Below are positions 4,047 through 23,208 of a DNA stretch of 64,000 bases, in pieces. Origin of the DNA: Takakia lepidozioides. Its lineage: Eukaryota; Plantae; Bryophyta. Positions within the stretch are counted from its first letter, which is position 1. Each line of letters opens with the position of its first letter. The stretch is taken from contig CM060732.1 of the NCBI GenBank assembly GCA_030704615.1, positions 40,982,001 to 41,046,000 of the forward strand, in the 5' to 3' direction. The notes under the pieces are model-generated. The model did no database searches and was not told where the DNA came from. It worked only from the letters and a program-made list of their open reading frames with translations. The position numbers were made by a program, and so were the translations under genes.

Positions 4047-4915
4047 CGAGCGCGGGCCAGGCAGCCAACGGAACCCCTGAGATAAAAAAGTAAATAATAT
4101 CCGATGAAGTCAAATTGTAAAAACAAATGCGAAAGAACGAAAGGGCCTCTGTCCCCTTTCTCTTTAAAGAAAACAGAAAAAGAAAAAATGCGAAAGAATA
4201 AAAGGAATAAAAAGGTGGAAATTAAAATCTCGTATTTACTCGGTCTGTCTCGCTCGTCTCGCAGCCTCGCAGAACGTCGGGTCGCAGGCTCGTGGGCTCG
4301 TGCGTGCCACACAGCACGCTGCTGGCTATCTGCGATCGTCGCTGGGGGATCGGTGGGCCGCCATATCCAGTGCTGGGGGAGCTTCCCACGCGCTTTCCTG
4401 GCACCCTTCTCTTCTCTTTCGAGCAGACCTGGTCTGGGTCTGTGTGCGGCACGTGCTCAGGCACCGAGCTTGCGCAGATCGCTGGGCTTTGTCGGGCTTT
4501 CTCGCTGTCTCTTCTTCTCTCACTCGATCTTACTGGAACTCAACTCTTTTGAAGAAGTGGGCTCTCGAGGTGGTTTGGGTAACCACCTTTGCGTAGGTAG
4601 ATCCGGCTACCAGCAAGCAAGCAGACGGCGTATGGAGTATTGAAGTCTGGGTAGCTGCATTTGACGAGCATTGGCCTCATCCGGGGTTTTCCGTCACAGT
4701 AGTGAGCGTGGCGAAGGAAAAGATTTTTATGTCGGGTTTGCCCTGTCTGTCACCTCCAGGGAAATGGTAGTAGCTCAAGGTTGATCTCAATCTTCGAATC
4801 ATTCTTTTCGGTCCTGGTGACGAGATAGTGTGGGGGCATTGCTCTACCTATTCGTGGAAGGAGGAAACTCCATCTCCAGCGGGGATTATAAAGTCGTTGC
4901 TACGGGGGGTAAGCA

Positions 4916-7886
4916 ATGGCCACCATGAGGGCTTCAATGGTGGCTCCGACATCGTTACCCGGTAACTATCAGCTTCCCAGGGTTAGTTTCAGCAGCTCAA
5001 AGGTATTTGGAGTAGGTATAAATGGAAGCCGGCCTCTACAGAAGATACAGTTGTTTGAGGACAGGGCAAACAAAGTGAAGGCCACGAAGGCAAGCGCGGG
5101 GTCGGATGGAGATTCGCAAAGTATGCCGCCCAGCCATAAGATTAAGGCGGCCAGCCTCATCGCATTCGAGGAACTTCGCAATGCTAGTTCCAATCGTGAG
5201 TTTGTCTCAACTGTAGTGAAGATTATGTTTGTGTGTTTGGCGGGGTTTCGAGCTGTTAATGCTGGTTGTTTCGGTGTTTGTTCATATTTTGTGCTGTTCT
5301 CATGCATAGCAATCCCAGTGCATTTTGTCTTCTGCTGCATTAGCTGGTGTTGCAACACTGATTTTGTATTGGATACGGAAGGTTGGGCTCCTTGTAATTG
5401 CTTGTGAGCTCTCCTCTTAGCAATGTCTATCCCATGGCATGGGTTTATAGACAAGTGTAATCTGAAATCATCAATATTATGGTGGGGGGTGTATTAGTCA
5501 TTAATTTTCTGCCAAATTGATCCGAAGGCTTTCTACATGGATGAGCTTGACGACCGGAAATGTCTCTCAAACCCTGTCTCTCAAACCCTTCGTAAATTTG
5601 AGCAAGGTGACCTCCAAAATGCTGAATGAGGAAGAGTTATAGGACAAACAGTTGGAGTTTGAGCTTTCAAAGATGCACATCACAGGTTCCAAATTGAGCT
5701 TCTTTGGATGTTTGTCACTCAGGTTATACAAGTGCAAAGAGCAGCATCATGGTGTTGGGACTGAGCTGTCACACAGCACCTGTGGAGATGAGGGAGAAAC
5801 TGGCTGTGCCTGAGGCTGAGTGGCCCCGTGCTATTGCAGAGCTCTCTAATCAGAACCACATAGAAGAGGCAGCTGTTCTCAGTACTTGCAATCGAATGGA
5901 AATTTATGTAGTGGCTCTCTCTTGGAACAGGGGTGTCAAGGAAGTCACTGAGTGGATGTCAAAGGTGAATTTACTACTCCCTGTTTGTTCAAGTAGCCAT
6001 ATGTCAGGATTTGGACATCTCATATTGGAAGCAATCTAGTCAAAGCTGTCACCTGCAGTGTAGAGGAAGCCTTGCAGTTGTGGTTTCTCATATTTTCAGG
6101 CTGGCCTTGTCACACTCTTTACCAGTTCTGAGTTGTGTCATTTTTGTTGTCTGCACCAGACAAGTGGCATCCCTGTCCATGAGCTTAGAGAGCACCTGTT
6201 CATTCTCCGTGATCGCGATGCAACCCAGCATTTGTTCAGGGTGTCTGCTGGTCTTGACTCTTTGGTTCTGGGTGAAGGCCAGATCCTTTCTCAGGTACGA
6301 GCATGAAGACATTGTCTTGCTAGTGAAGGAACCTGCCCCCAACCCTTAATGAAATTGTTGTATGTTAACACTGGACACTATTTCTTTCTTCATGTCAAAT
6401 TGTGGTGCTACAATGGCCTTCGATGACTGTATCTAATGTCCTTGCTTTCCATGTTGCAGGTGAAACAAGTTCTCAAAGTGGCGCAAGGGTCAGTTGGATT
6501 TGGTAGAAATTTAACTGGGCTATTTAAGCAAGCAATTGTTGCTGGCAAGCGAGTGAGATCAGAGACAAGCATCTCTGCTGGGGCTGTCTCTGTCAGTTCT
6601 GCAGCAGTCGAGCTGGCAGCAATGAAGCTTTTGGAAGGGGGTCTTTCTCGCGTTAATGTTTTGATTGTTGGTGCTGGCAAAATGTCAAAATTGCTTGTGA
6701 AGCATTTGATATCCAAAGGATGTTCAAGGATTGTCGTTGTGAATCGATCAGAGCAGAGAGTGCTTGACTTACAAGTAGAGTTCACTGAGGCTAAGATTGT
6801 CTACCAAACTCTTACCGAGATGCTGAGATGTGCGGGGGAGGCTGATGTTGTGTTTACAAGTACCGCCTCAGATGTCCCGCTGTTTGTCCGGGAGAATGTC
6901 GAAAACCTTCCTCCTGCTTCTCAGGTAAAGAATTGTTCACTCAACCATACATCATGCATGCAGACCAGCATGCTCTCTGCATCTCCATTTACTCTTGAAC
7001 AAGTGCAAAGTGACTGCATACACACATTTTTTGTTGATGGAGAAAGTTGCTGAGCCCACAGTTAGGGGTTGACATGTAGCTGTGCTTGGTGAACCACGTG
7101 AAGAGTGTAAATCTGCTAAGCAAGTACCCCTGAATACCTGTTCTTCTTTTTCTGGCAATGTATCCTTAACATCTTAGTACAGTCAGGTGGAGCAAAGTGG
7201 CCTATTCCTTTCTGGTCCTGAAGGCTCGGTTCTACTGGTGGAAGCCAATCATGTTTGTCTATGGGAGACTTTGTTCCACGGATCTAGTATTTATGGCTGA
7301 GATTGACGGATTGTTAAGTTGTACTCTTTGTTCCATCTAATCAAGTCTCTGGATGTTTGGATGATGTTAGATGGCTGGGGGCATGAGGCACTTCATCGAT
7401 ATCTCGGTGCCAAGAAATGTTGGCGCTTGTATCAATGGCCTGCCATCAACCCAGATCTACAATGTGGATGATCTGAAGGAAGTCGTGGCAGCCAACAAGG
7501 AGGAGAGGAGACGAAAGGCCATGGAAGCCCAGGTTATTATTGATGATGAGCTACAGAGTTTTGAGGCATGGCGGGATTCGCTAGAAACAGTGCCAACCAT
7601 TAAGAAATTGCGTGCATATGCAGAGCGGGTAAGGGCCGCGGAATTAGAGAAGTGTCTGGGCAAAATGGGAGATGACTTAACAACAAAACAGCGCAAGTCA
7701 ATTGAAGAGATGAGTCGGGGAATTGTCAACAAGCTGTTGCATGGCCCGATGCAGCATCTTCGTTCTGATGGAACAGATGCACGAACAGTAAGTGAGACCC
7801 TTGAGAACATGCATGCACTGGAGAGGATGTTTGATCTTGCGTCGGAGATAACCATCGTCGAGAGCAAGCTCAGATCCAAGGGATAG
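4916..7886 (+). CDS. hemA: Glutamyl-tRNA reductase, plastid (5 exons: 4916-5195, 5723-5964, ~6160-6294, 6460-6924, 7371-7886)
   Basis: Transit-like N-terminus followed by [29 protein letters not shown] (catalytic Cys), [25 protein letters not shown] (NADPH binding), DISVPRNV and [15 protein letters not shown]. Confidence 0.97.
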
Positions 7887-8960
7887 AAGAGTACACAATG
7901 AGCTCATGTCCCATTTTTGTAGATTAGTCGGCCACTTGGGGCAAGGTCGTTTCTCATTCTTGTCACCGCACATCTCTGTTCAGACATTCTCGGAGGGTTT
8001 GTCTATGGCCAATTTGTGCCGACATTCGTCACATGGATGTACCTGGAGTAGCTCTTCCTTGGGATGTCAAGACTGCTGATGCTCTGGTCAGACATCCTCT
8101 GGAAAGTTGAAGTGATACATATGAGCAGAACAAGTCTGAATTAGTGTGATAGCTTTGTCATGTCTCTGCAGCTGCATCAAATTTACCAGAATGGCTTCAA
8201 AAGGCACAAGAGGCATCTCCTCTGTTAATAATTAAAGGAGCATTCAATTGTTATAAGACCAATATTGGCCTGCGGAATCTGCAAGCTTGAGGTCCTACTG
8301 TCAGGTTGATGTGAAACAGAACAAACTATTGCATCATGAATGAAGCAGCTACCAAAATGCAGTTTCACTGCTATCTAGTAGCCCCAGAGCAGGATGCATC
8401 AAACAGTCTGTGTAGTTCTCACTTGAATGGACTTTAGTGAGGCTTTACTTGTGCTGTTGAGCAGAGCTGTTCGGTAGGCTTTACCTCTCCCAGCTGGGGT
8501 ATCGGACAGTTCCAGTAGTCATTTGGAGGTCGGCACAAATTAGTCTCAAATTGGTTGACAGCAAGGGGTTTGGTGTCTTCTACTAATGGTGTTTTCCATA
8601 CTTAGGGTCTACTTGGTGTTTTGGACCTTTCAATAAGTGGGGATTCCAGTGTCCTGACAACGACCTTTTTTCCCACCAGACTCCTAAGTAAGACTTATAA
8701 ACACCTTCTGACTGGAACGACAGCAGACCAGACAAACTGTGGCTGTTTCAGCATTCTAGTATGTACAAACTTGCCAAATCCAGCCCTATCAGATGACGGA
8801 TCCAGAAGCCCTCTCTCTGGGTTGTAGTGTAACCCAAGGATGAAACAGTTGCAGTCAAATAACTTCAGTCTAATAACCGTCCTCCACATCCCTAAGCTGA
8901 CCTATTGCATTGAGAAATGTCATCTCAAATGACTGCTCCCATCTATAATGACAAATAGTA

Positions 8961-11900
8961 CTAGGAAGAGATGCTCAGTGAGGGAGTTATATTCCAATAC
9001 TTAAAGTTTGCTGGAACAGCAAGGTTGGAGATAGCTATATTGACACCTAGTGTGGTCTGTAATGTGTCCAAGTTGTGAATGAGTTTTCTTGTTGACAATT
9101 TCACTGGCATCGCTATCACTCCCTCCATCATGAACAGTGTCACTCCTCCGACCGGGACCTGTGTCAGTGTTGTAGTAAAGTTCGTTAGAAAGCACCCGGC
9201 TTGATCTTTGAACATGCACTCCTTGTATTACACAGGTGGAATGCTCCGAAGGATGTGAAGAGTTTCGAGTTACAAATGATTTATGCCAGATAAATTCAGA
9301 ACCAAGGGTATCTTCACTAGAAAGTAGTTCCCTTCTATAACTAAAGCACAAAAACACCAACAGTGAATGAGGAACAAAGGGCCGAGAAGGCAGGCACCTC
9401 TTCAGTAGAAGTTTCCAGAGTCTCAATATTGATTCCATGAGAAGCCAGATATTCCGTGACATTGTACATAAGCCCTTCACACAGACCTCCGCCAATAAAT
9501 GAAGGTTAAAAAACTGTCTGCGCTAATATGAAGAGCCGACACCTAAAATCAACTCGTTTCAAAGGCAATAGAGGAGAAGGAACTAAACAATCTTGATTCT
9601 TGGGGCCAGTTTAAGAGCTCGTTGACCTTGTGTCAGATAAGGAGTATTGTGGGACGTCGAAACTGAGACCGCTGATGTGAGAAAAAAGTTTGCACTTCAA
9701 GTAGATAATTTTGTAGGGATTTGTGTGAAGAGTAGGTATCCACTCTTTTTCCCAACCAACATCAGGGAATAATCGGCCAAAGGTCATGTGCCACATTGCG
9801 TGTGGTGATATCTCTACCATATGTGGAACTGACATGATATGCAACCATGTCTGTCTTTAAATCAACCAACTATGTGAGAGGACAGCTTACCGGGATTGTC
9901 TGCACCTCGGAGTAAGAATTTCCGAAACTTGCGATTTGGGCGTGTCTCTTTCAGGCGATCGTCAGAAGTCCACCTTGTGTTCACCTGGAATAGAAAACAC
10001 CTGTAAAATCAAAATTATAGAGATTTTGGGCACTTCACTCCACTCCTGAAGCCTCAAACACTCAAGTCAACAGCACTGATCACACATTGAAAAAGTCAAA
10101 GGGTAGAAGTGGCCAAAGTTGAACATCATCTTCCAATCCATTGAGTCGAGCATTCTTCCAAGCACTTATTTCAGATTGGCAGCTACTGTGGATTATTTAA
10201 TGCTTGTACAAAATGGGAGTAGAAAGAAACCTGGAGACCCTCAATCTGTAGGAGAGACTCACGTAGCTGTTCTGCCTTCCTCGTTGTTCTGCATAACCTT
10301 CCTTAGCTTTGAGACCTTCTACCAAGGCCACCCCAGATGCCTGATGCCCAAATTTCACAACTGACCTCTCCAACCTAAGATTGTACCATAGCATACACAA
10401 TGCTACCCAACATTAAAGCCTAACAATTAGAAAGTGGAACTCCTCAAATAGAAAAACTAATTCTCACCAAATATCAAGAGCTGGAAGTCTGAAACACTTG
10501 ACCATGGTCATGCATAACAACCAGGCGTCCATCACGTGTCAATCTTTGACAGGAAGCAAGATGTACATCAATCTAAGTAACCACAAACATATGCTTTGAG
10601 TACGCAGAATTTTGAAGGGGATGTCTGATAGACTCCTGACTGAAAGTAGCATTACACTCCAAGAGTAACCTACGTACAACATTGAACCTGGATATATTTC
10701 CCAAATAAACAGTCACCAGTCTTTTTGCATCAAAATTTCAATCCATTGCACAATCTTTACATGAGACAACTTGAGGATGCCACAAAACGAAAAAGAGAAA
10801 GCTGAGTGCAAGTCTGACTTACGTAACATCAAAAGTGATAAGCATCAGAATGGTAAAGTCACCGGCCAAGCGTGCCATGCGACTCTCTTCCACGTTGGCT
10901 CCACATTCAAGCACTCGCTTGGTAAGCCTGGCTACAATGCCTGGCCTGTCAGGGCCTGACGCTGTCACCACTAACTGCTGCATTGCTGTTCCATCTACAC
11001 CAGACCTCCAGCATAGTATTACATAGAAGCATTAAACCCTTTGGAGAAATGGAAGCTTGGCTATCCCAGGAAGCACATGGCAATGACCTTACACATGGAA
11101 CTTTCAAATTGGAGCCAAGGTAAGTAACAGGCTCTAATAACAGAACGGAGTTAGCTGTGTTACATTGGATGTCCTGAACAGATCGAGTGTGTAGGCTCCA
11201 TGGTCCTGTAACCTCTGGCCTCGAACTGGAATCTGTCCATGAAACAACAACCAGCTGATTTAGGTAGTAAGCAAAAACGGAAGCTACAAAGAAGCTAATA
11301 TCCACAGCATATTACAAGGCAATATAAACTTATCTTCTAGCTCCTCCTTGAACAAAGGGATTGAGGTACATAGACCTACACCTGTTTATAATTTTCTCCT
11401 CTTTCTAAACACTTCCTTAAAGTTCACGAACTGCTCATTCTCCCTTCCAAGTGCAGGTGACTCGGAACAGCGAAATCATGTCAAGGACACGTTCACAAGG
11501 AATTGCCTACAATTATAGTCCTACCTCTGCTTAATCGTGTGGTATGTAAACTGTCACGTTCAGTATGAATTACAATAATGGTCCAATGTAGGGTGAGTGA
11601 TTGCATAAAATGCAAGCCAGTTGATTATGTGAGGCTTGCAGAGGCTAAGAGACTTAACCAGCATATCCTCGCGCTGCCTGCATTTCCCGACCCTTGACAG
11701 CATCAGCTTCCTCCGACCCAATACAGAATATCACATGTGCACTACTGCAGAACAAGATCCTCCTTTTCATAAGCACAAGATGAAAGCTCCATCAGAGTAA
11801 TGAATCACCGAAACTAAGGAGAGGTACGAAGACACAAACCAAATTGAATTCTCGTGTAGCAAGAAACAACATGAAAGAGACAATGGCATCAGTCGCGGAG

Positions 11901-12083
11901 TTAGAGGCAATTGGTGACGAACGCATACACGTGAGGGCGACAGTAAATAGATCTATTTACCTTGTAAGCGGAATCAGAGCTCAAATCATTAGGGCTTGCA
12001 GAGAGTGGAGAGGAGACAAAAGCAGAAGATGGTAGATAGCGATGCAGAGACAGCGAGCGCCTTAGACCTGTGGCCTTCCACAT
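8961..12083 (-). CDS. GcvR-like tandem ACT-domain protein, probably mitochondrial (core exons 11005-10823, 10288-10231, 9984-9891, 9474-9398, 9158-8961; proposed 5' exons 12083-11961 and 11225-11164)
   Basis: Manual splicing with consistent phases gives MQQLVVTASGPDRPGIVARLTKRVLECGANVEESRMARLAGDFTILMLITFDV...FLLRGADNPGLMYNVTEYLASHGINIETLETSTEEVPVGGVTLFMMEGVIAMP. This has two ACT signatures (G-x-D-R/N-P-G; G-x-N-I/V-E). The 5' exons are less certain. Confidence 0.85.
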
Positions 12084-12942: not shown

Positions 12943-15900
12943 TCAGGGGCCAGTATTATTGGCTCTGCGAACACCCAGAAGCATGTGTTCATGGGCTTGT
13001 TGCTGTCTGTGCTTCCATCTCCTTTTCATCCAAAGATCGTAAACCACCCTTCTTCGGCCCCATTTCCACCAGAATGGGCCACCCCGATGTCGCTGCTTCA
13101 GTCGTTTCCTCCTTGAATACCCATTGGACATTGCTGCAAGCTGGGCGCTCATTTTCAAAAAGGTGGGCGCGTGCAAATCCGACCAGTAGCACTTTTGCAC
13201 TGAGAAAACCTCCAACAATGCAGTTGCTCCTGCTGGCGTTGGTAAAATATCCTTGGGCAATGGCTTGGGAGTTTCCCCTAGGAGTACCTGGGTACAGATG
13301 GCATAGCATATTAGAGTTGAGGCTAAGATATTATATATGGGATGGCAATATGAATGACCCATTACAGTTGGAACAAAGGGCAGGATATTGTGTGGGAGCA
13401 CATGCATGACAAAATCAGATACGATACCTTCACAACAGCAGCTGCTGATTCTGAGATGGAGCGCAAATTATACCCTCCTTCCAAAACCACCAGCATTCTC
13501 CCCCCTGACAGAGAGTTTAGAAGAGATGCCATGTGGGCATAGCCCAATGGCGTGACATCACAGCCCCCCAAAGGGTCTCCTCTTGCGGCATCAAAACCAG
13601 CGGAGATGATGGTAATATCAGGATCAAACTGCCGTGCGATTGGAAGAACAATATGTTTGAAAGCTGAGATGTAATCCGCATCCCCTATTCCCGCACAACC
13701 CCAAGGTATGTTCACACAAAAGCCCTCCCCAGGACCACTCCCCACCTCTCTTGCCCCACCGGTTCCAGGGTAAAATGCGCCCCCTTCATGCCTGTGGAAA
13801 AATAATTCCTTGTATAAGTGCATAGGATGCCAAAGAGCGTAATTTGTGGGCATGCAAACAATATTGGAATCACACCATGCGTCTGCCTTAGTATGTGCAT
13901 TTTCTTACTCACCAGTTCAAAAGTTGACCCAAGAAGGGACGAAAGGAAACCGAAGCACCAGCTGACTGCTGGTCTCACCTGTGCAGTGAGATGTACAGGA
14001 TTGTTGGATCACGCTCAAAGATTTCTTGGGTTCCATTTCCATGGTGGACATCCCAATCAACAACCAGCACCTTATTGGCCCCAGCAGACTGGGCAGAACG
14101 GGCGGCAACACACACATTGTTGTGCAAACAAAACCCCATTGCTGTTTCCTCTTCAGCATGGTGCCCAGGTGGCCTTACCGCAGCAAACCCATTGTGGAAT
14201 GCTCCAGTCATGATTGCAGTAGCCAGATCTGCACATATGCCTGCTGCTAGCCTTGCAGCCAGGGCTGAATGCTTATTTGCATACGTATCTGGCGTGAAGT
14301 AGCTCAAGTCCTCCTTTTCTTTTGTGGCTTCAACTGCATTGATGTGTTCTGTACAGTGCACCAACTCGAGCTCAGCTTGCGTAATTTCCCTCACAGGAAT
14401 TGCTAAGCAACGGCCAGGGATGAGTCCTAAAGATTCCAGTCCTGCAATGATGGCTCGCAATCGGTTGGGCCTCTCTGGGTGTATTTTCTGTGTCTCCTCA
14501 TGCAACAGCATCCGGTCATCAAATCCAATGGCCGTACGCCTTTCAGAAGACATCACAGCTGTCCCCCCAGTGCCTGCAAAAATGAAATTTATTCAATTCA
14601 GTCCATGCTTTTTCTCCCATACCACTGATCTTACAGGCTAACCATTAAGTACCTAAGAGGAGTAGGACCTCCCCTGCCATACCTGTAGACATCAAATCTG
14701 GTGATTGACACCTTCCTGACCAAGTTCCCTCCTCTTGGGAGGAGACTTTGTCATATTCTGCCTCACCTTCACACATACCCACAAATAACAGTTAAACTGG
14801 TGCACTGCAGCATGATAACACAGCACTGTCCAGACAATAAACAATGCCGCTCTAAGGTAACTGCAATTTGCAGAACAGGGGTGCAGTCAGGCTCTTCGGT
14901 CCACCAGATAGTGTTCCTGACAGTGTACATCTGTGCTAGCCAAGACTGACATTATTTGTTTGAGCAACTGAACTCAAACAGTAAGTAAGGACCTTCTCAC
15001 TCTGGGCACTACACACAATGCGAGGGAATCTTTGAAAGCCATAGAAAAACTGCCACTTCATTGAATTTCTGGGTTGCTGCTTTAATTGTTTTCAGAGTAA
15101 CCTTAGTAGCAAAAGAGTCAACAAGGCTCACAAGGCTCCACATCATCTTGGGGAGGAAGTAGTGGCTCCTTTCTTCCTTGCTTCATATCTTGGGCTCTTG
15201 TGGACATTATGAATTTCCTTCTTTCTCTTAATCACTTTCAAAAGATCAAGAGCTTCAAAAGGCATACTTGACCAATCGAATTACCTGCAGGAACAAATGA
15301 TGATGCCAAGTATCCATGATTCAAAATGCCCGACGTCCGATGTTCATTGCAACGTATGCAATGGCTAACCTCATCTGAATTGGGCATAGTGCAATTGGTG
15401 CAATACCAGCGCGAGTGGGGCTCCCAGTCTTCATCCTCTGATTCTTCATCTTCCTCCCCCCAGTCTTCGGCAGCATACATGGCAAGAAGTTCCTGAATTT
15501 CCCGGATATGTCTTTTCTTTTCTTGTGGCTGAGGGTCAGAAGCAGTAGTTGGTTCCTCAACACCGCCATCCACCCCTATGTGTGCTGGAGAGCCCTCGAG
15601 GGATCTCTTCTTCTCCATCTCTGTATCTGAGCCCTAGGATGCCATACACAATAAACTGTCAAAGTTCTGTCCACAACTTGTCCATGTATTGTCCACTTAA
15701 AATGGTCAGTCAATTGAGCAACCAACAACTACAAATTAACACTTCCCACTGGTAAAAGCACAATGCTCCACTTTTTGAAGTCAACACGAAAATGTGAAAA
15801 AGAGCATCATTTTGGCACCTGCATCTTGCGATATGCTCATAAATGCCTATACTGAATTGGGTGTGGACACTAACTATGACAACTCTTGAAGGCATGCATT

Positions 15901-17110
15901 CAGGAGGGAGAGAGAGAACCTCAATAACATCCACAGGAGGCCCAAAGAGCCCACGAGACAAGGAAAGGCAACAAACAGAGAAACACCAAGAGAGTTTTCA
16001 AATAGCAACCTGCTTCTTCTCTTTCCTCTGTTGGGATTTTGACTTTTTCTCCATAAAGACCTTGGGGCCTGCGAGGTTTCCACTAGCACCAGGTTCACCA
16101 CCCCTTTCTGCATTGATGCTACCAACCACCTCTTCAGCAATCACTCCACTTTTGGCCAGAATCTGAGATCCAGTTTGCTGTGAGTGTTCCCGCTTCACAG
16201 ATGCCCCTGCTTTAGCAACTACCTCCTTGACAGATGGGTATGCATCTTGATTGTGTGCTGGGACTTCAAACAGGAAAGGAGGGTCATGATTGAGTTTTTC
16301 AAGCAGAATCTCCTTAGACTCTGTTCTGTAACCAGCATAACTGACTAGCCAGGGTTACTGAATGAGTCAGACTGGACTCAATTGTGACTGGTCTGAAGCC
16401 CGCAAATTCACATATGTAGGATTTCAATCGAAGCTAACTCAATGACCTAATTGCCACATTTGTGCCTCATCACAGCTCTATTTTCGGAAGTTTTCCTTCC
16501 TGCATTTGTGCCTTCCTACAGAGCTGATTTGAGGGACATCCATAGAGAGCTGGTTAGCATTCGTAAAGGCAACACTATCGATGGAAGCGACTAGGGTTCA
16601 GATTTAGCATTCCAGAGGACACGGTTTTGACAGAAATTCGCTGCTCCTGGAGATCCGTGTACCTCCAACATTTACCAACAATAATCTGACAGTGAAGCCC
16701 CACAACAGACCTGGACGCGCAATTTATTAACCAACAGATTCTGCGCTCATGATTCAATATTATAAACCCAAAATCTCGTAAAGACTAGAGCAGGTCCTCA
16801 AGGCACCCACTATCCAACAGGTTGTTAACATGAAACACGGACACGTTGAGATACCATCCCATCAACCGAGACGAATCCACACGACGAAACCTGATGCGGA
16901 TTTATTGGTATGACCTAACAAAATTTCGAAACATCTCAATGTCAAGTTTCGCCCACATCACACAGTTTCACTGTGTGGCTCACCTGCGTTTTGTGGACTG
17001 TTATCTGCCACAGCGGAGCACACCTCAGCCCTCCTCTGTGGCATCAATCGTGTGCTGCCATCGTCCAGTGTCTTCTCAATGCCCAGGGTTCCTTTCTCCT
17101 GGTGCTCCAT
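12943..17110 (-). CDS. HDA15: Class II histone deacetylase, HDA15-type with RanBP2 zinc finger; N-terminal exons 17110-16984 and 16263-16010 derived from DUS3
   Basis: WYCTNCTMPNSDEVSHCIRC (RanBP2 zinc finger), HPERPNRL, VRPPGHHA, GFCLHNN, DWDVHHGNGTQ, SAGFDAARGDPLG, LEGGYNL, and C-terminal WWKWGRRR. The 5' exons splice in frame to the exon starting at 15633. Confidence 0.92.
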
Positions 17111-17125
17111 GGCAGTGAGCCCTAT
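16010..17125 (-). repeat. Inverted partial duplicate of DUS3 exons 1-2 and flanking intron sequence (counterpart ~17845-18855 on +)
   Basis: MEHQEKGTLGIEKTLDDGSTRLMP matches [44 protein letters not shown]...EKKSKSQQRKEKKQ matches [21 protein letters not shown]...[14 protein letters not shown]. Acceptor regions match too (CATGACCCTCCTTTCCTGTTTGAAG vs AATGACTCTCCTTCCCTGTTTGCAG). Confidence 0.9.
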
Positions 17126-17859
17126 AAGACCCATGGCACATGTGCACCTCTTGGCTAAACTACTAAACCTAGTTATTCTTCACTAAGATATTCTCTCCAA
17201 CTTGGTCTTAGCAAATTGCGCTAAACTTGGCGGGATACTCCCTGTACAGTATGGCCTTTTGAGATACTCTGGCCAACTGGACCTTACCGCTTACAGGCAG
17301 ACCAACCAACAAATTTTGGGAGATGGGTAAGCAATCACCTTCCGGTTACAAACTATAATTCCTAGAAATCTGAGAGAGTCGCGGTCGGGTACAGCTCTGT
17401 CACAACTGCTCATGTGAGTGAAGCACACTTACCCCTGTTTCGGTCTGTGTTGTCGTTAGATGTTTGAACGTTTGAACATTTGAACATTTGAGCGGGTTTT
17501 TGATAGTATTTTAGTCTTGTTCTGTGGATTCAGGGATCTTGTTATGCAGTTTTGTCTTGTGGGTGGTATCTTGTTTCAAATACTAGCAAGGCTGGCATTG
17601 AGCCTAATTCCATGGAGTTGCCTGTGCGTGTGTGATAACGGTTCTTCCCCCAAAATACCTGTATCCGTCAGTTTTCAGGCTTTGCATGCAAACTTGCTCG
17701 GACTAGCTCGAATTTGGGACCAGTCTAGTCTCATTTGACTTGCCACCCATTTGTGGTTCTCAGTTTATCAAAACATTTGTGGGTTTTTCTGTCAAGGACC
17801 GTTTACGCATACAGTCATAGTGTGAAGTACTTGCGAGGTGTTCTTGCAGGCCCGCTGCT

Positions 17860-20800
17860 ATGGAACACGAGAAAGGTGAACTGGGCGTTGAGGAAGCACT
17901 GGAAGAGGACAGCGCACCATTGATGCCAGAGGTGCCTGGTCAGGAGTGCTCCACCTTGAAAGCGGTTACTATAGAAATATCAGAGAAGCCTGTCATCAAT
18001 TCTTTGGATCCTGAACAAACACCGGAACCTGTTGACACCGGTGAGGCTCTACATGTTGCATTGTTTTGTTATCAAGATTTCTCAGTACATTACGGTCATA
18101 TTGTGCGAGGTTTGATTTTATGTATGCTTGTCTAATTGGCCTACGTTTTTCTGTTCTTGTTAACAAGCCGTTTCTTATTTGGGGATAAAACCTGGGTGCC
18201 TTGAGGAACAGGCGGGAGTTTGTGTTCGCTATATCCATTGCTTTCTTAGCTTTAGTAATGAGCACATCTGTGGTGGTCACGAATGTGTATCTTCTTGCAG
18301 TGAATTTCTGTCTGATAATGTCTCCTGAAAAGCTCAAAGCTAAATCCCAGGCAATGTCAAGCAAGTCTGTCAAAAGGTTATTTCCTTCAGTGGTTGTAGA
18401 ATTCTCACAATTGTGGCTGCAACTGACAAAGTCTCTCACAACCTTCAGTTAGGCTTAATGTGATCCAACCCTGTGGATCTGGAGCAGCTAGATAGTCAAA
18501 TGACAACCTTGCTCAGATTGTTACTGATTTACTCAGTAAAGGGGGCTTGCAGTTATGTCTTAAGATATCAGTTTTTGATAACTCGAATAATGACTCTCCT
18601 TCCCTGTTTGCAGTCCCAACACCCAATCAAAATGCATACCCATCTGTGGAAGAGCTTGTTGCCAAAGCACGAGCACCTGTGAAACACGAATACTTGAGGC
18701 AAGCTGGACCTCGAATACTGGCAAATAGTGTAGTGGTTGCTGAAAAGGTGGTTGGAAGCATCAGTGTAGAAAAGGGAGGCGAACCTGGTGGTGGCAGCAC
18801 CACAGTCTCTTTGGAGAAAAAGTCAAAGCGACAACTGAGAAAAGAGAGGAAGCAGGTTTCTGCTAAAAGCCTTTTTGTTGTTTGTTTGTTTGTCACATAT
18901 TCGAAGCCCAGGAGCTCGTTGTGCTTCCTATGAATGGTAAAAAAAAAAAAATCTCTGTTGCTGTCCCTCCCTTTGTGGTCCTACTGTGCACCATGAGCCC
19001 TCTGGGAAGTTCCTTTATTCTACTTCCTCCACCCATGTATGCCTTCACAAGTCATCATAGCCAACGTCCATGGGACAAAGTAACACCAGGGTTGCAGTGA
19101 CAGACAACACAAACACAGTTTCGTCTACAGCCACAGAATAAGCATGGAGTGCGGTAAAGCATTCATAGGTTATGCCAAGCACAGCAAAAGTAGCCCAATT
19201 ATTCCTCCTTGGTAGTGTCATTTTCAACTCATAGGGGCAGACACCTTTCTCTCTATGGTCTCCTGCCAGCACTGATTTATCCCCTTGCCATAGCAGAAAA
19301 TGCAGGCATGGCAAACACAGTTACAACTTCTGCTCAGGCAATGACTTCGTGGTTTAGCAATCAGCACTAGTAGGCCGAGGTTATGATTTGTGCTTGTGGT
19401 AAGCAGTGGCTAAGGGAGTGGAGGCTCAGCCCCTCAATATCTCAGCAATATGGAACGCATGAAATACGAGCTGTGTGATGGAAAGTTGATGCGGGAAGGC
19501 CTGAAATGATGGCTGTCTGAATGTGGTGAAGGAGTGCCACTCCAATCTTCCTTGCGATTTAGGAGCTAATATTTGTGGTGTTTGTCTGCACCAGGCAAGG
19601 TCAAGTGGATCAGCAGAAAATGTTTGTGGTGCAGTAGCCAGGACAGGTGATGTAAAGTCATGCCGTTATGGTACCTCATGTCGCTTCAACCATGACCTGG
19701 CTGCCTTCCTAGCACAGGTATCCTCATATCCCAGAGAGGGTGACAGGCAGAGAGAGACACAGATTAGAACAGCCAAATAACACATGGATGAGAAAGAGAA
19801 TGTACTCATAAGACGTTGTTTGCCGTAGCCTGGATGAGAAAGAGAGAGAGGGAGACAGGAGAGAGAGCTTGGATGCAGTATCTGTTAAAATCGTCAAAAT
19901 TTTGCGTCATTGATGTATCCATGGGGCAATGTAATTGAGGTGAGAAGCTGTGTGTTCATCTGTTGTGGGTGCAGAAACCTCCAGATATACCAGGCAAGTG
20001 CCCCTTTGTAGGTTTGGAGATTGCCTGCCCTTATGGATATGCGTGCCGATTTGCGGGTACTCACACTCAGACCCAGAAGCCCGAAGGTGAGGAGATTTTG
20101 ATAGACAAGAAGAACCAGAAGTCTGGTGTCCAAGAACTGAATAACTTGAACAAGGACTTCCAAAAATTGCTCTGGAAAAATGCAGTTACATTTCCGAGGG
20201 CAGATGCTGAACTGGGAGCTTTGGGCCTTCTGGTATTGTCACAAGCTTTTTGCCCCCTGTGAATGAGTATATTTCTTCCTTTTTCGTTTCTTTCTCCTGT
20301 TATTATTCCATACCCATACGCCCTCAGGCTGTCGGTGAACACAAAAAAGGTCCTTCTTTTGTCTTCTCTCTGTTAGATTTTGAATGGAATGCTACTGGAT
20401 CCCCGTGGTGTCTGGGTAGATGTAAATGTTTTGTTCGTCTGTTTGTTGATTGGCTATTTGCATATGCCATGTCATCTTCTTTATAACTTGATGAGTATGT
20501 TTGCTTGTATTGGCGTTGAGTGGGGCTTTTGAATCAAGTTGTGAGGCTTACTTACACCTACCCACAGTAAAATGACCATGCCTGATGTCCAGTGGGTTAC
20601 TTGTGAGTTGCCAGGGTAAGGCAAAGAGAACAAACGTCAAGCAGGTCTCGATGGACAGTAAGGAAGAGAATGGACCTGACATTTCTCAAGACCCTAGTCT
20701 TACCACAGTACACTTCGAAGACAAAGTTATGGAGATTGACGACCCCTCCAAAAGAGTACAGGGAGATGGAGCTCAATCCACTCAAGCAGGAGATTTGGAG

Positions 20801-23208
20801 AAGGAGGAGCCTGTTGCATTTGATGGATCTTATGGAGAAGTTGGAACAGAGAAACCAAATGCGAACACTGTTTTGAATGGAATTGAGGAAGAAGCACCGC
20901 CTCAGAAACGGGTCCGGACTACCGTTGACAGTGAGACTACCGAATTCGCAACAATTGCTCGTAATATTTCCAGCGATAAGGCAACAACTATTACAAGTGC
21001 ATTGCCAACTAGCAGTGTCGTAGTGCCCAACCGTATGGACCCTTCTTCACCTCACAAAATTGAGGTAGCAACAAGCCATGTTAACGGAAGCAGTGAATCC
21101 TGCGGTACACCTGTCAATGGGCACATGGGGAAGAGTGATACAATTGGTCTGGCTGATGAATCTGCCCAAAATTTGGATAAGGAGGTGAGATTATCTCGAC
21201 GAGAGAAGAAACTGATTGATTTTCGAGGAAAGTTGTATCTGGCACCTTTGACGACTGTGGGCAATTTGCCATTTCGGAGAGTTTGCAAGCATCTGGGGGC
21301 AGACATCACCTGTGGAGAAATGGCTATGTGCACCTCTTTATTGCAGGTAATGTACTACCAAGAACTGTATGTTATAAACCACATTTCACAGCTATTGCTG
21401 CAGTGACCATCGCAGCCTTATTTTTGAGGACAGCCTCTACAGCAGCAGGAGGGCCCTCAGGTACCATGGTTTGGGGTTGCATCTTTGCCTGTACACATGC
21501 TACAGTTGCCAGTGGCAATGGGCGTAGTCTAATTATGTTTTGTTTTCAGGGACAAGCTTCAGAATGGGCCTTGTTAAGGCGGCATGCAGGGGAAGATGTG
21601 TTTGGAGTGCAAATTTGCGGGTCATATGCAGACACTGTTGCACGGGCTGCCGAGCTGATTGAGCGAGAGTGCGAAGTGGATTTCATTGATTTGAACTTGG
21701 GGTGCCCCATTGACCTCGTGGTGAACAAGGGCGCTGGGTCATGTCTTCTTACCAAGCCAGCACGGCTGGAGCAGATTGTGAGAGCTACTGCTGCTGCCAT
21801 TGACAATCCCCTCACTCTCAAGGTAATTTCCCCATTTAGTTTTGTCTGCAAGTTCCATTCACATGAACTGTAGTTTCTTTCAGAACAAGCTCAAAACTGG
21901 AAAGTTTTTCACAGACTCTCCTCTGCCCTCTCTTTGCTCTTCCCATAGACCCTTCTGGGCCTGCAAGGGACTTCATCATTTTTTGTTTTTCGTTCATTTT
22001 TCTTTTCCAACAATTGGGGTTTTTCGTATGTTACGATATATGACACCCCTAACTGACAAATATAATGCTCCACAAACTTAATTATGTAGGCCTGGCTGTG
22101 TAATTCAGTTACGAATGGGCTACTTCGAGGGTCGGAACTGTGCACACACCCTGCTTCCACAGATGCACAAGTGGGGAGCAGCGGCCGTGACCATTCATGG
22201 CCGAACACGCCAGCAACGTTACAGCAAGGTGGCAGACTGGAACTACATCCAACAGTGCACGAGTCAGGCGCCAGAAGAGGTGCAGTTGATTGGAAATGGA
22301 GACGTGTTTTCATACACTGAATTCAATGACCGCTTACAAAGTGGTGGGTCTAAACTCGCTACATGTATGATCGCCCGCGGGGCCTTGATTAAGGTGATAC
22401 ACTCATGACATTTGTGTTTTAGCTTTCTGTTACAATGTTGCTCCGATGCTGCCTCTCAGTGGTATTGTGGAGGGTACTTTTCTGACTATAGCTGCTGGGG
22501 GGTGCAGCCATGGATTTTTACAGAAATCAAGGAGCAGCGACATTGGGACATTACAGCTGAAGAAAGATTAAGTATCCTCAGAGACTACGTGAGCTTCGGC
22601 CTTGAACATTGGGGCTCTGACTCTAAAGGTTCGCCCCTTTCCCCCTCTTCCCACCCTGTTACTCAACAAAAATGTTCAGTAGAGTCTAACAAGAATCCTG
22701 TTGAATTTGGGGACTGAAGGTGTGGAGACAACAAGGCACTTCTTGCTGGAATGGTTGAGCTATGCCCATCGCTACATCCCTGTTGGCGTTTTGGAGGTGG
22801 TCCCCCAACGGCTAAACTGGCGGCCACCCAACTATTTTGGACGGAATGATTTGGAAACGATGATGGCTTCCGACAGTGCAGCTGACTGGGTAACTCTTTT
22901 ACCCTGGAAAGTCGTGCAAGTTCTCATGGCAAAGTTGGCTGCTATGTCAGTTAGTATGAGAAGCTGTGAGAAGCTGCTCTCTCATGTAACATGAGAGAGA
23001 GATTGCCCTAGTTAGACTTTACTTGCTGATTCTACAATGTGCAGTCAATGTAAGAAGGCTAGAGCTGGTCTGACTGTGACTAGGTGGCCATGGGGGTGGG
23101 ACTCACCAGGTTCGAATAACAGAGTTGCTGCTAGGCCCTCCACCACCCGGCTTTCTTTTCTCACCAAAGCACAAGTCCAATGCGTATGACAAGGTTGAAA
23201 ATGGCTGA
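17860..23208 (+). CDS. DUS3: tRNA-dihydrouridine(47) synthase DUS3-like with CCCH zinc fingers (multi-exon)
   Basis: [11 protein letters not shown] and [13 protein letters not shown] zinc fingers; [72 protein letters not shown]; ends [14 protein letters not shown]. Confidence 0.96.

Follow-up and report, generated by a model that had tools for sequence, protein, structure and literature searches.

Takakia lepidozioides carries a probable chimeric HDA15 gene, formed by inverted duplication of the 5′ part of the neighbouring DUS3 gene

We analysed a window of 64,000 nucleotides (nt) from the moss Takakia lepidozioides (GenBank assembly GCA_030704615.1, contig CM060732.1, positions 40,982,001 to 41,046,000 of the forward strand). 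All coordinates given below are positions within this window, unless a related locus is named. It contains a histone deacetylase gene of the HDA15 type on the minus strand and, head-to-head with it, a DUS3 gene on the plus strand. The first two coding exons of the HDA15 transcript are diverged copies of the first two coding exons of DUS3. We consider it likely that this HDA15 is a lineage-specific chimeric gene, which arose by an inverted duplication of the 5′ part of DUS3.

In the reading we favour, at least 1.1–1.2 kb of DUS3 was duplicated in inverted orientation, beside its source and upstream of HDA15. The duplicated stretch begins a little ahead of the start codon and takes in coding exon 1, intron 1, coding exon 2 and the start of intron 2. 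The ancestral HDA15 would have had a non-coding first exon and an intron in its 5′ untranslated region (UTR), whose acceptor was placed 8 nt upstream of the ATG. The copied DUS3 exon 2 ends in a phase-0 donor, which now splices to a TAG acceptor 7 nt above the old CAG, giving an mRNA predicted to encode HDA15 with an N-terminal extension of ~132 residues, of which 127 come from DUS3 and 5 from the former leader. Translation would start at the copied DUS3 ATG, and HDA15 would be driven from a DUS3-type 5′ region. The extension would be a loosely constrained, non-globular, charged tail, with its frame held open mainly by the cost of a stop, which would disable HDA15.

The chimeric transcript was found in two sequencing runs (X1 and X2) from two studies, stored as contigs and labelled “RNA?”. 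The two runs contain 28–33% of the sampled words of 15238–17140, a share close to the exonic fraction. Since every intron is skipped at GT..AG borders, the contigs are transcripts. The joint between the two copied exons (16263/16984) and the joint onto the old HDA15 exon (15633/16010) were present in contigs of both runs, with 100% identity. One X1 contig of 2372 nt extended from below 13978 to 17088, through all five HDA15 exons. The first exon was covered from 16984 to 17088 in X1 and from 16984 to 17025 in X2, and the second exon (16010–16263) was fully covered in both. No contig from X1 or X2 fell within 15673–15869 or 16264–16854. The RNA-supported chain (17110–16984, 16263–16010, 15633–15285, 14766–14683 and 14573–13978) is free of stops over 470 residues and runs into the Hist_deacetyl domain. 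The original prediction, made from the sequence alone, had proposed this chimeric structure, with stop-free copied exons, GT/AG borders and an in-frame join at 15633, and the joints and the open chain bear it out. The contigs are blind to transcript starts, expression levels and rare isoforms.

A separate 210-nt X1 contig (15076–15285, minus strand) crosses the donor at 15284 into the intron, with about half the depth of the main contig. It could represent intron retention or unspliced RNA. When read through this donor, the frame stops at 15238, and the product would be a short protein that keeps the DUS3-derived head and the zinc finger but lacks the deacetylase domain.

The duplication itself was recognized by three approaches. 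An inverted-repeat search gave three collinear inverted pairs between 16004–17101 and 17866–18861, with 74–80% complementarity, and a weaker intronic pair collinear with them (Table 1). When one arm was compared by blastn with the reverse complement of the other, the exon-2 arms (16296–15971 and 18580–18893) aligned over 327 columns with 77% identity (E-value 3e-64), and the exon-1 arms (17121–17015 and 17849–17952) with 73% identity (E-value 4e-12). By tblastn, the exon-2 peptide was 58% identical to the other copy over 84 amino acids (E-value 5e-25), and no third copy of the exon-2 block was found within the 64-kb window. The HDA15 copies and DUS3 exons 1–2 share ~80% of their nucleotides and 57–61% of their amino acids.

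The exon-2 arm alignment extends 33–38 nt into the introns at both sides, hence the copy came from genomic DNA and not from complementary DNA. Only a faint similarity is left between the intron interiors of the two arms (z ~4). The detectable arms are head-to-head and lie 727 bp apart (17121 to 17849), and a palindrome test found no arm similarity in the spacer (17122–17848). Midway between the arms, within the DUS3 5′UTR intron, there are four tandem copies of an 8-nt unit (17449–17483, consensus close to RTTTGARC). These results confirm a local, inverted, DNA-level duplication of the 5′ part of DUS3, as had been claimed, and show that the intron flanks were copied as well. The DUS3 source exons have the same phases as their copies, as predicted, and the RNA joints corrected their borders to 17860–18040 and 18614–18855. 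A false palindrome introduced by the assembler, a known type of error for inverted repeats around a short spacer, has a negligible probability here. With 20–25% divergence and several length changes between them, the arms are not collapsed or mirrored reads, and each arm is matched on its own, at 100%, by transcript contigs from two independent studies.

For the direction of copying we compared the window with related plants. A library search with the exon-2 copy as query gave a single genuine cluster, P0001, which represents a DUS3 exon from a peat-moss-type plant and lies on peat-moss-associated metagenome contigs. This exon lies directly upstream of a zf-CCCH_DUS3L exon and of Dus exons, and therefore the block belongs to DUS3 in another moss-type plant. 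In this related moss (DUS3 locus L001), the block stands just before the CCCH exon. At the outgroup DUS3 locus there was no second copy, and the 10 kb upstream of it contained no HDA15. A second library match (P0002) was a spurious repeat protein and was discarded. Neither window gene was among the matches, so this genome is probably outside that library and the search is a weak test for the absence of the chimera elsewhere.

On the HDA15 side, fragments of the deacetylase exon, 78–82% identical to that of the window, were retrieved from related plants of at least five taxa and led to the loci L087–L094. All the related HDA15 loci have the zinc-finger exon. At five of them, no DUS3-like exons were detected in the 3.0, 8.7, 9.4, 1.7 and 3.1 kb upstream (E-values up to 20), DUS3 was not nearby, and the frames just upstream of the ATG were closed or unrelated. 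One of the loci (L089) has a pogo-like transposon, with HTH_psq and DDE_1 frames, at its positions 4718–7584, about 2–5 kb upstream of HDA15. In another (L087, 7767–12109), a glutamyl-tRNA reductase gene lies tail-to-tail with HDA15, as it does in the window (5700–7900). This neighbour is common to both, and the glutamyl-tRNA reductase side of HDA15 is therefore ancestral. In the window, an extra ACT-domain-like gene (about 8961–12083) is placed between the two.

Together, the presence of the block in the DUS3 of a related moss and its absence from five related HDA15 loci support a transfer from DUS3 to HDA15, the direction given in the original prediction. Between the two window copies the identity is 61%, and the HDA15-side and DUS3-side copies are 46% and 55% identical, respectively, to the outgroup DUS3. 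The window copies being closer to each other than to the outgroup, the duplication took place after the split from the outgroup lineage. The synonymous divergence (dS) between the copies is 0.49, signifying an old event, which may date back tens of millions of years. It is highly improbable that the extension is instead an old feature of moss HDA15, or that the block moved from HDA15 to DUS3. Such a scenario would suit a duplication that is not young, and the six relatives examined are all distant (78–82% identity in the deacetylase exon). However, it conflicts with the block having the same place in the related moss DUS3, with the five HDA15 loci lacking it above closed or unrelated frames, and with the greater similarity of the window copies to each other than of either to the outgroup.

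A metagenome scan with the deacetylase exon gave only bacterial deacetylases, with at most 54% identity, and no plant locus. Word searches, one with HDA15 exon 3 and another with the exon-2 copy as query, had no match, which says little, full-length proteins being outside the length filter. The literature search found no paper in which HDA15 and DUS3 appear together.

The related loci also indicate how the join could have been made. In three of them (L087, 2990–3030; L089, 9230–9270; L090, 1510–1550), the HDA15 ATG is preceded by a conserved 8-nt leader, with a CAG directly before it, and in a fourth (L088) there is no AG at the corresponding place. Judged from this conservation, the CAG was probably the acceptor of an ancestral HDA15 5′UTR intron. 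The window keeps this CAG, and its RNA uses the TAG acceptor 7 nt further upstream, so that a 15-nt leader is read in frame as five codons. Splicing of the phase-0 donor of the copied exon 2 to the old CAG would be out of frame.

The extension is predicted to be translated from the ATG at 17110, which has a GCCATGG context. A second in-frame ATG, also within GCCATGG, lies at 17134. Six more ATGs follow between 17110 and the ancestral ATG, one of which opens a 53-codon frame overlapping the ancestral start. With in-frame ATGs in good context and further ATGs upstream of the ancestral start, the extended protein is expected under the scanning model. The net length changes of the copied exons (−54 and +12) are multiples of three, and a simulated neutral copy remained stop-free in only 2–15% of the trials. 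This weakly suggests that the reading frame is under selection, perhaps for no other reason than that, with an ATG upstream, any stop would be fatal to HDA15.

The ratio of non-synonymous to synonymous substitution rates (dN/dS, omega) between the duplicated exons was 0.54 in the pairwise comparison. The HDA15 copy evolves ~3 times faster than DUS3. Omega did not differ significantly between the two branches (Fisher p = 0.20), and the value of the copy (~0.7) cannot be distinguished from neutral. The earlier claim that frame retention suggests selection is weakly supported, given this omega and the loss of DUS3-conserved residues. For the exon-2 copy, AlphaFold2 gave no confident fold, only one long helix of low confidence (predicted local distance difference test score, pLDDT, 60; predicted template modelling score, pTM, 0.20).

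Several observations weigh against a chimeric protein with a meaningful N-terminus. The longest HDA15 contig ends at 17088, 22 nt short of the ATG at 17110. If transcription started near 17088, the first in-frame ATG would be codon 23, after a 5-codon upstream frame; a protein starting there would still include the whole exon-2 block. Rare, out-of-frame use of the old CAG acceptor may be hidden by the contigs. When polarised with the outgroup, amino-acid changes number 15 on the HDA15 copy and 5 on DUS3 (p = 0.04), and the non-synonymous/synonymous counts are 16/7 on the copy (omega ~0.7) and 8/9 on DUS3 (omega ~0.27). Seven of the changes on the HDA15 copy fall within a motif kept by both DUS3 genes, and the peptide by itself may be functionless. 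The related loci are all distant, with at most 82% identity in the deacetylase exon, and some of their flanks are short.

Part of this evidence would also fit a simpler situation, in which the copied exons do no more than supply a swapped promoter and a long 5′ leader, the upstream frame is incidental and the working protein starts at the ancestral methionine at 15618. The near-neutral omega of the copy, the loss of DUS3-conserved residues, the lack of a predicted fold and the position of the ATG at 17110 outside the contigs all agree with it, and the ancestral ATG is likewise in good context. We nevertheless regard it as unlikely. The spliced leader has seven ATGs before 15618, including two strong in-frame ones and the overlapping 53-codon frame, the RNA uses the frame-restoring acceptor rather than the ancestral one, and the frame has been kept through ~20% divergence and several length changes. 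We therefore retain the translated chimera as the preferred reading.

With respect to regulation, the longest HDA15 contig ends at 17088 and the DUS3 contig at about 17362, about 270 nt apart; these contig ends need not be true starts. The region between the two genes is a candidate for a shared promoter of DUS3 and HDA15, which appears plausible. A bipartite nuclear localization signal (NLS)-type pattern (two basic residues, a spacer of 10–12 residues, at least three basic residues of five) was matched at residues 122–138, across the exon junction. The ancestral part of HDA15 already has a pat4-type basic motif, and in Arabidopsis HDA15 a working N-terminal pat4-type NLS is present, plus C-terminal signals (PMC3281883). 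It is thus not evident that HDA15 needed a new import signal. A regulatory effect, with HDA15 transcribed from the DUS3-facing region, seems likelier than the gain of an import signal.

By its sequence, the minus-strand gene is a class II histone deacetylase of the HDA15 type. The named proteins closest to it are the “Histone deacetylase 15” proteins of Sesamum, Cocos, Dionaea and Nymphaea. The two halves of the Hist_deacetyl domain (PF00850) were recognized with E-values of 1.5e-54 and 9.6e-36, and the tandem-His and Asp-x-Asp-x-His-His motifs are readable in the translated open reading frames. The exon 15633–15285 encodes an acidic stretch and a RanBP2-type zinc-finger pattern, and the ancestral CAG acceptor persists 7 nt inside it. 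The finger scored 15.4 bits with the Pfam model Zn_ribbon_RanBP (cut-off 27, E-value 0.011); by eye, the pattern W-x-C-x2-C-x3-N-x6-C-x2-C is exact, and it is conserved in the relatives. Upstream of this exon, the exon-1 copy (ATG at 17110–17108, GT donor at 16983) is 54 nt shorter than the DUS3 exon. Its donor has no counterpart at the aligned DUS3 position, and phase 1 is kept. The exon-2 copy ends with a Lys/Arg-rich stretch. The downstream part of the hybrid intron that follows (15634–16009) is presumably the old HDA15 5′UTR intron.

The DUS3 parent gene is intact and expressed. Its transcript contigs have the joints 17413/17850, 18040/18614 and 18855/19595. The CCCH finger was recognized with PF25585 (38.8 bits, cut-off 30) and the Dus domain with PF01207 (E-value 3.6e-18). 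At 19671, in the CCCH exon, one low-depth X2 contig has an A where the window and X1 have a G, which is either a strain difference or an error.

Table 1 Exons, introns, inverted pairs and candidate promoter region of the HDA15–DUS3 locus.
Feature	Coordinates	Strand	Remarks
HDA15 first coding exon, diverged copy of DUS3 coding exon 1	16984–17110	−	127 nt, phase 1
HDA15 intron, counterpart of DUS3 intron 18041–18613	16264–16983	−	720 nt, GT..AG; only flanks and faint interior similarity left
HDA15 second coding exon, copy of DUS3 coding exon 2	16010–16263	−	254 nt, phase 0; 81% nucleotide and 58–61% amino-acid identity, net +12 nt
HDA15 hybrid intron	15634–16009	−	376 nt; upstream part from DUS3 intron 2 (similarity to 15971, perhaps 15864)
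HDA15 ancestral first coding exon	15285–15633	−	15-nt former leader 15633–15619 (now 5 codons), ancestral ATG 15618–15616
HDA15, next two exons	14766–14683, 14573–13978	−	14573–13978 holds the first half of Hist_deacetyl; in frame with ATG 17110
HDA15 open frame, second half of Hist_deacetyl domain	13362–13853	−	
DUS3 non-coding 5′ exon	17362–17413	+	Start limited by contig; joint 17413/17850, GT..AG
DUS3 exon with ATG at 17860, source of exon-1 copy	17850–18040	+	Coding 17860–18040, phase 1
DUS3 coding exon 2, source of exon-2 copy	18614–18855	+	Phase 0; N-terminal block common to DUS3 of related moss
DUS3 exon with DUS3L-type CCCH zinc finger, unduplicated	19595–19717	+	
DUS3 open frame, part of Dus catalytic domain	21283–21873	+	
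Candidate divergent promoter region, putative	17111–17361		Between HDA15-copy ATG and first base of DUS3 contig; no arm similarity
Inverted pair	16087–16302 and 18575–18790		216 nt, 79%
Inverted pair	17015–17101 and 17866–17952		87 nt, 74%
Inverted pair	16004–16068 and 18797–18861		65 nt, 80%
Weaker collinear intronic inverted pair	15864–15899 and 19035–19070		

The locus offers a natural example of a conserved chromatin enzyme which, on the reading we prefer, would have acquired both a new front end and a new 5′ control region in a single step. The intermediate features remain visible: the donor gene alongside, the captured 5′UTR-intron acceptor and the 7-nt acceptor shift that aligns the frames. 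It is also a testable case for whether grafted, fast-evolving tails have any role. If the head were more than a passenger, a tRNA-modifying enzyme would be coupled to a histone deacetylase. We find it rather doubtful that the DUS3-derived head shares a property with DUS3 (a partner, a sub-nuclear address or strict co-regulation by a single divergent promoter) and, as a separate idea, that neighbours' first exons are recurrently grafted onto genes of this genome by local inverted duplication at gene heads, both taken together.

Plant HDA15 proteins are class II RPD3/HDA1 histone deacetylases with a RanBP2-type zinc finger (PMC3281883, PMC2671507). Like them, the window gene has a Hist_deacetyl domain and a RanBP2-type cysteine pattern before it and, as in Arabidopsis, an N-terminal pat4-type basic motif. 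It differs from them by an mRNA with ~132 extra predicted N-terminal residues, derived from DUS3 and absent from five related moss-type loci. The neighbouring gene resembles DUS3/DUS3L in its DUS3L CCCH finger and Dus domain, and the HDA15 extension is homologous to the DUS3 N-terminal block. In contrast to DUS3, the HDA15 copy has neither zinc fingers nor a catalytic domain and has lost several conserved motif residues, and for these reasons a DUS3-like action is not expected of it.

Partial duplication with exon shuffling is a well-established source of new genes, and Drosophila provides examples such as Sdic and the chimeras formed by tandem duplication. As in other partial-duplication chimeras, the parent stayed intact, its 5′ exons and their intron flanks were duplicated as DNA and are joined in frame by splicing to the exons of a second gene, and the new gene would also have gained the 5′ region of the parent. 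Unlike in those, the duplication is inverted and head-to-head with its source, it captured a pre-existing 5′UTR-intron acceptor, and only by way of an acceptor 7 nt above the ancestral one do the frames match. The HDA15 chimera is thus a clear and well-supported example of a gene born by exon shuffling, although it has precedents.

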